Source: Salpingoeca rosetta
Lineage: Eukaryota > Protista > Choanoflagellata
Direction of reading: 5' to 3'
Length of the DNA: 64,000 nt
Assembly (NCBI GenBank): GCA_033442325.1
Contig: JAWQFM010000015.1
Coordinates: forward strand, 382,590-446,589
Each line of letters opens with the position of its first letter. Position 1 is the first letter of the stretch. The notes below the pieces were generated by a model. It worked only from the letters and a program-made list of their open reading frames with translations. It did no database searches and had not been told where the DNA came from. Positions 48,491-51,400 of this stretch are shown here, one piece after another. The translations under genes were made by a program, and so were the position numbers.

Positions 48491-51400
48491 TTACAGCAGC
48501 ATCTTGACGGGGTCCTCCATGTAACGCCGGAAGGCGGCCAGCCACTTGGAGCCGACTAAAGACGTGATTGTGATTGTTGTTGTTGTTGTTGTTGTTGTTG
48601 TTGTTGTTGTTGTTGTTGTTGTTGTTGTTGTTGTTGTTGTTGTTGTTGTTGTTGTTGTTGTTGTCGTGGTCGTGGTGGTCGTGGTGGTCGTGGTGATAAA
48701 GCGTTAATGTAAGCGATAGCAAGCAAAACAAACGGCACAGGTAACATGCAACACGCGGAATTGACACACACGCACGCACACACCAACCCCAACAAAACAC
48801 ACACACATCAGCAAACAACATGCGCACCTGCACCGTCGACGACGCGGTGGTCGCAGGAGAGGGTGACGGACATGTAGTTTGCGGCGGCAAAGCCAGACTC
48901 TGCCGTGGGGTCAACAACAACGCGCTGGGCCGTCTGGCCAACAGCGAGGATGCACGACTGGGGCGGGTTGATGATGGCGGTGAAACGGTCAATGCCAAAC
49001 ATGCCGAGGTTGCTGATGGTGAAGGTGCCGCCCTGGTACTCCTCGGGCTTGAGCGCGTTGTCGCGCGCCTTGGCAGCAAGGTTCTTCACGTCCGTCGAAA
49101 TCTCCCGCAGGCCCTTCAGGTCTGCACAGGTTTGAAGGAAGGGAGGGGGGGTTGTGGTGGTGAGGAGGTGGAAGTGTGGATGAGAAAATGAAGGGAAGGA
49201 AGAAGGGCAGCGGCGGCGTGAACAGGGGAGGAAGAGAGCCAAAGCTCCAAAGAGAAAGGGAGACACAACCAAATGGTAGTGGAAAGAATGTTGGCTTTGC
49301 CAGCACGCGCCGCAGTGGGAGAAATAAACACATGCGGCAGTTTGAGCATGGGAGGAGGAAGCCGGGGGCACCGATGGCCCCGCTCGGTGTATGCGGTTGG
49401 TAGGCCTGCGCCGCCACGAGGAAACTTGTTGGCGGGCAGGGGGAGTTGAAAAGTACCGCAAAGGAAGGGAAGAGGACACGGGAGGGGACAGGAAGAGGGA
49501 AGCAAGAACGGAATGGACGCAAGGAGGGAAGCGAGCGCTGCAAGGAAACACACGTGCACCGACATACCCACAAGCACACACACACATACAATCATACACA
49601 CGTGTTGATCCTGAGGCTGACCTGCGTCAAAGACGATTGGGGTGATGAGGCCGGAGTCTGTGCTGACGGCGACGCTGATGTCGACCGTCTCGTTCTGGCG
49701 GATGACCGTGTCCATCCACGACGAGTTCACCTCCTTCACCTGCAAAGTTGCGTAATGTTGCGCGCGTGCAAGTACGCATGTGTGTGCGTGTGTGCGTGTG
49801 TGTGTGTGCGTGCGTGTGTGTGTGTGTGTGTGTGTGTGTGTGTGAGTGAGTGAGTGAGTGAGTGTGTGTGTGTGTGTGTGTGCGTGTGTGTGAGTGAGTG
49901 AGTGTGTGTGTGTGTGTGTGCGTGTGTGTGTGCGTGTGTGTGTGCGTGTGTGTGTGCGTGTGAGTGAGTAGGTGTGTGTGGGGGGGGGGGGGCGTGGATC
50001 GGCTGTTACGATGCAGTGCAGTCATCGTGCATGTGCGTGACGATTCTTCATTGTTCACCGCACCTCCTTGAGGGCGAGGGAAGATGCCTTGATCACAAAG
50101 TCGTTGACGGAGAGCTTGTAGTCACCGTTGCCTGCGAATTGGAGAAAAAAAAGTGTGCACGTGTGAGTGCGTGAGTGCGTGCGTGCGTGTGCATGAGCGA
50201 CAGAGCCATGGCGCGCCGTGCAGCACACGCCCGTGCGTGTCAGGCAACCAGCAAGGCTGACATACACGTCCCGCCACTCTTCCAACGCCACGCACGAGAC
50301 GTGTACCAGGGTGCACACCTTGGTCGTTGAGCTGCTTGCGGAGGTTGAGGACCTCATCCACGCAGACGTCGACGTTGAGGTAGTAGTGTGGGATGTTCTG
50401 CTTGGGACTCCGTCAGGCGCGAGGCAATGACCTGGCAACGCGGCGGATGAGGGGTGTGGGGGTGGAGGCGTTGCACGTGAGGGGATGGGATGACAGGGCA
50501 AGACGAGGGAAATATTGGGACAACGGGCGGGAAGAGGGAGGAAAAGAACGAATGAAGAGAATGGAAGGTGGAAGAGAATGAAAGGTGGATGGATGAAGGG
50601 AGGGAGGCAGACGAAGGAACTGCGGGACAGAAAATGTTCAGAAAGGCAGGAAAACAACAAGAGTTGGTTGTTGTTGGCTTTGCCAGCACGCGCCGCAGTG
50701 GGAGAAATAAGCACATGCGGCAGTTTGAGCATGGGAGGAGGAAGCCGGGGGCACCGATGGCCCCGCTCGGTGTATGCGGTTGGTAGGCCTGCGCCGCCAC
50801 GAGGAAACTTGTTGGCGGGCAGGGGGAGTTGAAAAGTACCGCAAAGGAAGGGAAGAGGACACGGGAGGGGACAGGAAGAGGGAAGCAAGAACGGAATGGA
50901 CGCAAGGAAACAGACATGCACACCGCGACACACACATACACCAAACACACACAATAACACACACACACGTGTACCTTGCGGACGTTGCTGAGGGGAATGT
51001 CTGTGTACGCGGCACCTGTGGCGGCGGTGGCAGCGGTAGACTCGGCAGGCGCAGCGGCTGTGCAGATGAAGTCATGGGAAGCAAGACCGGCATGTGTTGT
51101 GAGTGCCAAAACGCACAAAGTACCACACACCACAACGCAGGGACTCGTTCCCACCCCACGAACGTTTCAAACCAAAAAACCACGTGCCCAAACACCTTCC
51201 CGGGCCCCGCACACACACACACACACACACACACACACACACACACACACACACACACACACACACACACACACACACACACATACAAACAGACCCCCCC
51301 CCACACACACATACACACACCAACCCTGGTAAGCGTCGACGTCGGCCTTGGTGATGCGGCCGCGTGGGCCCGTGCCAACAACGTTCTCAAGCGCAATGGA

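Follow-up and report, generated by a model that had tools for sequence, protein, structure and literature searches.

The stretch of Salpingoeca rosetta DNA analyzed here (termed the window) comprises 64,000 nucleotides (nt) of contig JAWQFM010000015.1, assembly GCA_033442325.1, positions 382,590 to 446,589, and includes on its reverse strand a DLAT-type gene for pyruvate dehydrogenase (PDH) E2, two introns of which carry nearly identical copies of a 237-nt block. This block is described below as a candidate gene for a box H/ACA small nucleolar RNA (snoRNA), an assignment first proposed in a first-pass annotation made from the sequence alone. The identity of the host gene proposed there is supported by exon translations that contain lipoyl, E3-binding and catalytic segments and by matches of the largest exon to PF00198 proteins named either dihydrolipoyllysine-residue acetyltransferase or PDH E2. 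(For the protein search this large last exon was taken within a single unspliced, stop-free open reading frame, and matches were scored over the exon residues only.) The host gene, the two introns and the parts of the block that they share are as follows, all being on the minus strand:

48491..52575, minus strand: host gene, pyruvate dehydrogenase E2 (DLAT-type), mapped exons, from exon translations and protein matches
49122..49621, minus strand: host intron A, 500 nt, with GT..AG ends; the block begins 96 nt past the 5' splice site, and 167 nt separate its final ACA from the 3' splice site
50432..50974, minus strand: host intron B, 543 nt, with GT..AG ends; the block begins 66 nt past the 5' splice site, and 240 nt separate its final ACA from the 3' splice site
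49289..49525, minus strand: duplicated block, copy 1, 237 nt, in intron A
50672..50908, minus strand: duplicated block, copy 2, 237 nt, in intron B, with one mismatch relative to copy 1
49461..49525, minus strand: shared CT-rich 5' flank of copy 1, 65 nt, 10-20% purines, composed like the rest of the intron
50844..50908, minus strand: shared CT-rich 5' flank of copy 2, 65 nt

The two copies form a direct repeat (49289-49525 = 50672-50908) that was recovered by a repeat search of the window and by alignment of the two host introns; they are 99.6% identical, and the sole mismatch (T/C, column 135 of the copy alignment) falls within the 18-nt apical loop of the second of two hairpins described below. 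At both edges of the block identity drops abruptly, and on the sense strand its 3' edge lies directly after an ACA, which is followed by UUC in copy 1 and by a second ACA in copy 2. Thus the earlier claims regarding the extent of the repeat, its single apical-loop mismatch, its sharp end after ACA and its pyrimidine-rich 5' flank (taken there as a sign that part of the identity reflects recent duplication or conversion) all stand. Outside of the block local alignment scores between introns A and B are no higher than those of reversed-sequence controls, so that their residual likeness is ascribed to microsatellite and CT composition and homology beyond the block is rejected. Just 5' of copy 1 (about 49526-49546, minus strand) there is a 21-nt stretch between CCTTGC direct repeats that is missing at copy 2 and that looks like a slippage-type indel.

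A DNA search of the 55.4-Mb assembly finds exactly two copies of the block, both in the sense orientation relative to the host gene, and the same two copies are found by a genome search with a covariance model (termed R1) built from them together with the H/ACA structure, the third match having an E-value of 4.9. Within the window the block is the only duplicate of at least 60 nt that is not of low complexity (based on a dust-filtered self-comparison). Many randomly oriented genomic copies, which would have pointed to a short interspersed nuclear element (SINE) or a miniature inverted-repeat transposable element (MITE), are therefore not seen; neither terminal inverted repeats nor target-site duplications are visible at the block edges, and the copy number of two speaks against the SINE/MITE reading. 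The 175-nt core of the block, in which purines make up 33-53% of residues, forms a compositional island within a GT microsatellite followed by CT-rich filler (10-20% purines), whereas the 65-nt 5' flank belongs compositionally to that filler. A coding role for the block was considered and rejected: all three sense frames are open, as is attributable to stop-poor CT- and GC-rich sequence.

Read on the host sense strand, the core consists of the following elements (given for copy 1 except where stated otherwise):

49286..49460, minus strand: predicted mature RNA, copy 1, about 175 nt, from the base of hairpin 1 to a predicted end 3 nt past the terminal ACA
50669..50843, minus strand: predicted mature RNA, copy 2, with ends predicted likewise
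49392..49460, minus strand: hairpin 1, with lower stem UGCGGU/ACCGCA and pocket strands of 14 and 7 nt
49388..49390, minus strand: internal ACA, the start of ACACCG, 1 nt past the hairpin 1 stem and 14 nt below pocket 1
49365..49381, minus strand: small hinge hairpin GGGGC-CAUCGGU-GCCCC, 5 bp, 17 nt, absent from the minimum free energy (MFE) structure of the whole RNA
49294..49363, minus strand: hairpin 2, with lower stem GGCUU/AAGCC and pocket strands of 8-9 and 6-7 nt
49289..49291, minus strand: terminal ACA, 1 nt (A) past the hairpin 2 lower stem and 12-13 nt below pocket 2, at the end of inter-copy identity
50672..50674, minus strand: terminal ACA of copy 2, likewise 1 nt past the hairpin 2 lower stem, with another ACA directly after it

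The stems, pockets, hinge (AUACACCGAGC) and small GGGGC/GCCCC hairpin that had been quoted for this element are all present, and every proposed base pair of the H/ACA structure is a standard pair. Hairpin 1 has a GC-rich upper stem of 11 bp with a single bulged C; when it is folded alone, the MFE and centroid structures are both this pocket hairpin (z-score -4.11), and none of 200 shuffled sequences is as stable. Hairpin 2 has a two-part upper stem (CAUGC/GCGUG plus GCCGCA/UGCGGC), and its pocket hairpin is likewise the MFE structure when folded alone (z = -2.74).

Box H/ACA RNAs are defined by two hairpins separated by a hinge that contains an ANANNA box (box H), by an ACA located 3 nt from the 3' end, and by internal pockets within the hairpins (PMC1865073, PMC6800473). 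The target uridine lies 14-16 nt above box H or ACA (PMC1865073, PMC6800473), and guide-target duplexes are 8-17 bp long with at least 3 bp per side (PMC6800473, PMC1865073), the shorter duplex being on the 3' side in natural guides (PMC6800473). Like eukaryotic H/ACA snoRNAs (PMC1865073, PMC6800473), the DLAT element has the hairpin-hinge-hairpin-tail layout with a pocket in both hairpins, an ACA after the 3' hairpin and a box 14 nt below pocket 1; it also lies in the sense orientation within an intron of a housekeeping gene, and it has a sister copy in a different intron of the same host. The spacing of 14 nt between pocket 1 and ACA(CCG), which is within the 14-16 rule, involves an internal ACA that the first-pass annotation overlooked even though it lies inside the hinge (AUACACC) quoted there; that annotation was right that the hinge lacks a perfect ANANNA, the best hexamer being ACACCG.

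The favored interpretation of these features, held with somewhat better than even confidence, is that the DLAT introns harbor a recently duplicated and previously unannotated box H/ACA snoRNA gene of an ordinary kind. Under this interpretation each block would be a gene for an RNA of about 175 nt, oriented in the sense direction within a DLAT intron, and we infer that this RNA is expressed and is released from the spliced intron through exonuclease trimming. It would then bind Cbf5/dyskerin, Nop10, Nhp2 and Gar1 by means of the two pocket hairpins, each followed by an ACA, with the first ACA presumably serving as a degenerate H box. The likeliest role of the RNA would be guiding pseudouridylation of large-subunit (LSU) ribosomal RNA (rRNA), with hairpin 1 as the credible guide. 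The second copy would have arisen through a very recent copying or conversion event, at the DNA level, of a 237-nt tract between introns, with the 65-nt filler carried along. The H/ACA reading advanced earlier thus remains the best one available--given the pocket hairpins, the ACAs, the sense location within introns and the existence of two copies--but it is not demonstrated, as the missing Rfam and homologue matches and the spacing of pocket 2 taken up below make clear. Likewise, the designation 'candidate novel' is apt inasmuch as the element was previously unannotated, but not in the sense of a new kind of RNA, since the class is a known one.

Possible targets were sought by scanning every U of the small-subunit (SSU) and LSU rRNAs of the same genome for bipartite pairing to each pocket. 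For hairpin 1 the best site is the LSU sequence agg-UG-gggaguu (i.e., the U of CAGG-U-GGGGAGUU), with 3 + 7 Watson-Crick pairs between it and the guide ..AACUCCC / CCU.. around the unpaired UG, a duplex that falls within the 8-17 bp range and that, as is usual, has its shorter arm on the 3' side of the pocket. The best LSU site for hairpin 2 is uuggc-UG-ggg (the U of UUGGC-U-GGGG), with 5 + 3 pairs, three of them G-U; other registers of the hairpin 2 pocket were tried and yielded no better rRNA targets. The two sites, the Us of which are at about 4842 and 4855 on the reverse strand of locus L006, are 13 nt apart, with the hairpin 2 site downstream, within the conserved segment CAGGUGGGGAGUUUGGCUGGGGCGG, which we take to be the strand entering the P-loop (helix 80). 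In a joint test a pair of hits as good as these occurred within 25 nt in 9 of 3000 pocket shuffles (and in 72 of 3000 at a laxer threshold). Because this proximity statistic was chosen post hoc, after the data had been seen, it is a lead rather than proof, and it counts as a weakness of the favored interpretation. Hairpin 1 would accordingly be predicted to target the U of the first of these sites, and hairpin 2, on a weaker footing, the U of the second site, 13 nt on, beside the P-loop. Neither of the two predicted LSU sites is known to be pseudouridylated in yeast or human. A bolder proposal, which we consider rather doubtful, is that the element is an H/ACA guide specific to this lineage, with one pocket for each of two pseudouridines that are separated by 13 nt on the strand running into the P-loop of the peptidyl-transferase centre. 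Under this proposal its layout would be archaeal in style, each guide hairpin being followed by a simple ACA and the hinge containing a third hairpin.

Several observations weigh against an H/ACA function, beginning with the boxes and their spacing. No A.A..A follows hairpin 1; the nearest hinge hexamers (ACACCG and AUACAC) keep the ANA core and lack the last A. Pocket 2 lies 12 nt from the terminal ACA (13 nt if the closing C-G pair is open), which is just below the 14-16 rule, and the additional hairpin within the hinge is atypical. Thus, unlike eukaryotic H/ACA snoRNAs, the DLAT element has ACACCG rather than ANANNA in its hinge, a pocket 2 that is 12-13 nt from ACA, an extra 17-nt hinge hairpin, no Rfam family and no statistically secure target. 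Folding of the entire RNA is likewise unfavorable to it: although each hairpin is the MFE structure by itself, the fold constrained to the H/ACA structure has an energy of -52.2 kcal/mol versus -61.1 for the MFE structure, a gap of about 9 kcal/mol, and the latter breaks hairpin 2 and rearranges the 3' half. When the flank is included, the hinge pairs with the flank instead. In addition, when a deliberately permissive scanner is used, about 150 ACA-boxed pocket hairpins per strand, and about 10 loci with such hairpins in tandem, turn up by chance in 128 kb (both strands), most of these matches being much poorer than hairpin 1; hence the architecture alone is weak evidence. Nor do individual targets help, inasmuch as the best target of hairpin 1 is equalled by 11% and that of hairpin 2 by 87% of composition-preserving pocket shuffles, so that single-pocket rRNA targets are at chance level; and neither pocket has a target in U2 or U6 small nuclear RNA (snRNA), the two snRNAs scanned.

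Searches for homologues also provide evidence against it. Rfam searches of the element region at E-values up to 10 give microsatellite noise only (mir-297, SCARNA2 and the like) and no family match on the element itself; at the gathering score nothing is found in the whole window or in the contigs of the relative. The R1 search yields no third genomic copy and no match in either of two other contigs (L007 and L008). The first of these, a 4-kb Logan contig with a GC content of 38%, represents the closest relative retrieved and is 83% identical over the large last DLAT exon; its DLAT introns contain no counterpart of the block by BLAST, guide-motif search, R1 or the H/ACA scanner. With no paralogue found in the genome, no orthologue found at the one related DLAT locus retrieved and block copies that differ at one loop base only, the stems have no covariation to support them. 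The intron of this relative at the position of intron B (L007 2015-2215) forms a stable fold (z = -3.1), the lowest in energy per nucleotide among the introns of that gene. As an H/ACA counterpart it was rejected: there is no terminal ACA, the distances are wrong and it has no guide motif in common with the window element. Both intron A and intron B occupy positions that are common to the DLAT gene of this relative, in which the exon order is kept, implying that the introns are old and that copying or conversion of the block from one to the other came afterwards. All other mapped DLAT intron positions are also common to the two genes; the gene of the relative (L007 668-951) has an extra intron in the lipoyl-domain exon, which is continuous at 52011-52220 of the window.

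The strongest competing explanation is a neutral recent duplication: templated repair, conversion or slippage would have placed a copy of a 237-nt intron tract in another DLAT intron 1.4 kb away, the hairpins and ACAs of this tract would be incidental and no stable RNA would result. We regard this as possible, though on the unlikely side. Its best support is that the 99.6% identity spans 65 nt of ordinary CT-rich filler, which shows that near-identity reflects recent copying rather than selection or constraint--that is, recency rather than a conserved RNA--and leaves no need for selection as an explanation. It can also appeal to the chance frequency of H/ACA-like tandem hairpins in GC-rich DNA (about 10 per 128 kb), to box and distance rules that are obeyed only in part, to the chance level of single-pocket targets and to the failure to find a homologue in Rfam, in the genome or at the DLAT locus of the relative. 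It accounts less readily for a hairpin 1 that is far stabler than shuffled sequence (z = -4.1), for a core whose composition is distinct from both introns, for a copy that ends exactly at ACA, at a plausible distance from a pocket, for the absence of any other complex duplicate in 64 kb and for the adjacency of the best LSU sites of the two pockets.

An improbable alternative is that the block specifies some other structured intronic RNA, either an element acting in cis on how the two DLAT introns are spliced or a stable RNA outside the H/ACA class, in which the flank may pair with the hinge. The MFE structure of the full 237 nt does pair flank segments (GUCCC..CUC..GUGU) with the hinge (ACAC.GAG.GGGGC) around hairpin 1, the z-score of the whole block is -2.5 and the shared block extends beyond the putative snoRNA. 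The flank, however, shares its low-complexity CT composition with the remainder of the intron, and such sequence pairs easily with a G-rich hinge by chance; moreover, there is no family match, nothing similar is found in the homologous introns of the relative and no independent sign of regulation was seen. A misassembled second copy or a low-copy transposon fragment is very improbable, for although a collapse or expansion error could leave two neighboring segments that are almost identical, the copies lie in different introns with unique flanks, the exons between them are correctly ordered and match the gene of the relative, and a mobile element is at odds with only two genomic copies and with edges devoid of visible terminal inverted repeats or target-site duplications.

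Other classes of non-coding RNA were considered for the same element. A small Cajal body RNA would be expected to have a Cajal body (CAB) box, and no UGAG occurs in the apical loops ACAAGUUUCCUCG and UGUGUUUAUUUCUCCCAC; nor, as described above, is there a target in U2 or U6. Inspection by eye revealed no template-like motif, as in telomerase RNA, and no C or D boxes, as in C/D snoRNAs. An H/ACA reading of the opposite strand was rejected as well: AAAGGA follows the reverse-complement hairpin, but its pocket would be at a distance of 19-20 nt and a terminal ACA is lacking.

The layout of the favored H/ACA candidate also invites comparison with archaeal multi-hairpin H/ACA small RNAs (PMC1865073), with which it shares an ACA after each pocket hairpin, about 14 nt below the pocket, and more than two hairpins. 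It differs from these in that its upper stems contain no identified K-turn, in that its middle hairpin has neither pocket nor box and in that it occurs in a eukaryote with intronic processing; hence the similarity is a resemblance only.

A closer parallel is provided by ALDH6A1 of the same genome (L014, G000:C1), the last two introns of which contain two hairpins that are about 78% identical over 86 nt (2100-2280 and 2690-2875) and that are followed by perfect ANANNA boxes (ACACUA and AGAUGA), the second copy ending in ACA. These hairpins have the appearance of an older H/ACA-like pair, again in a metabolic-enzyme host. Like the DLAT pair, it occupies two introns of a metabolic-enzyme gene amid microsatellite and CT-rich intron sequence; in contrast to the DLAT copies, which are 99.6% identical even across filler and thus point to a very young duplication, the ALDH6A1 copies differ in their 3' halves, which points to an old one. 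Genome DNA and R1 searches reveal no sequence similarity between the two families. The ALDH6A1 pair shows that neither a metabolic-enzyme host nor the presence of sister copies in different introns is out of the ordinary in this genome, so that, of the features initially considered unusual, the host no longer qualifies, whereas the missing ANANNA and the extra hinge hairpin remain atypical. The canonical H boxes of ALDH6A1 show that the local style is canonical, which counts slightly against an H/ACA assignment of the DLAT element.

Choanoflagellates are close relatives of animals, and the DLAT element, if real, would add an unannotated pseudouridylation guide to their sparse catalogue of non-coding RNAs; in the library searched, no paper deals with choanoflagellate snoRNAs together with pseudouridylation. 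It would also constitute a very young intron-to-intron snoRNA duplication, the boundaries of which are still visible, and would therefore bear on how snoRNAs spread within host genes. Known H/ACA biology would be left unchanged.

Several minor features of the host gene and of the genome were noted along the way. The DLAT introns consist largely of long microsatellites--(TTG)n, (TG)n with TGAG variants, and (CA)n--located at 48575-48665, 49780-49990, 51205-51320 and 51800-51935. Two of these form a 112-nt inverted pair (51209-51320 and 51820-51931) that is 93% complementary and whose members are 0.5 kb apart. Among the RNAs relevant to the target scan, U5 snRNA went undetected in a genome search with RF00020, and the sole U6 snRNA match (about L010 1501-1572; G000:C9:815095-815166) covers model positions 1-68 of 105 and deviates from the usual U6 after CUGCGCAA, which could reflect an intron, a pseudogene or a divergent 3' half. 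One SSU rRNA copy (G000:C9:20062-23333) spans 3272 nt, versus about 2100 nt for the others, and may hold an insertion of about 1.2 kb; pieces of ribosomal DNA occur near the ends of many contigs.

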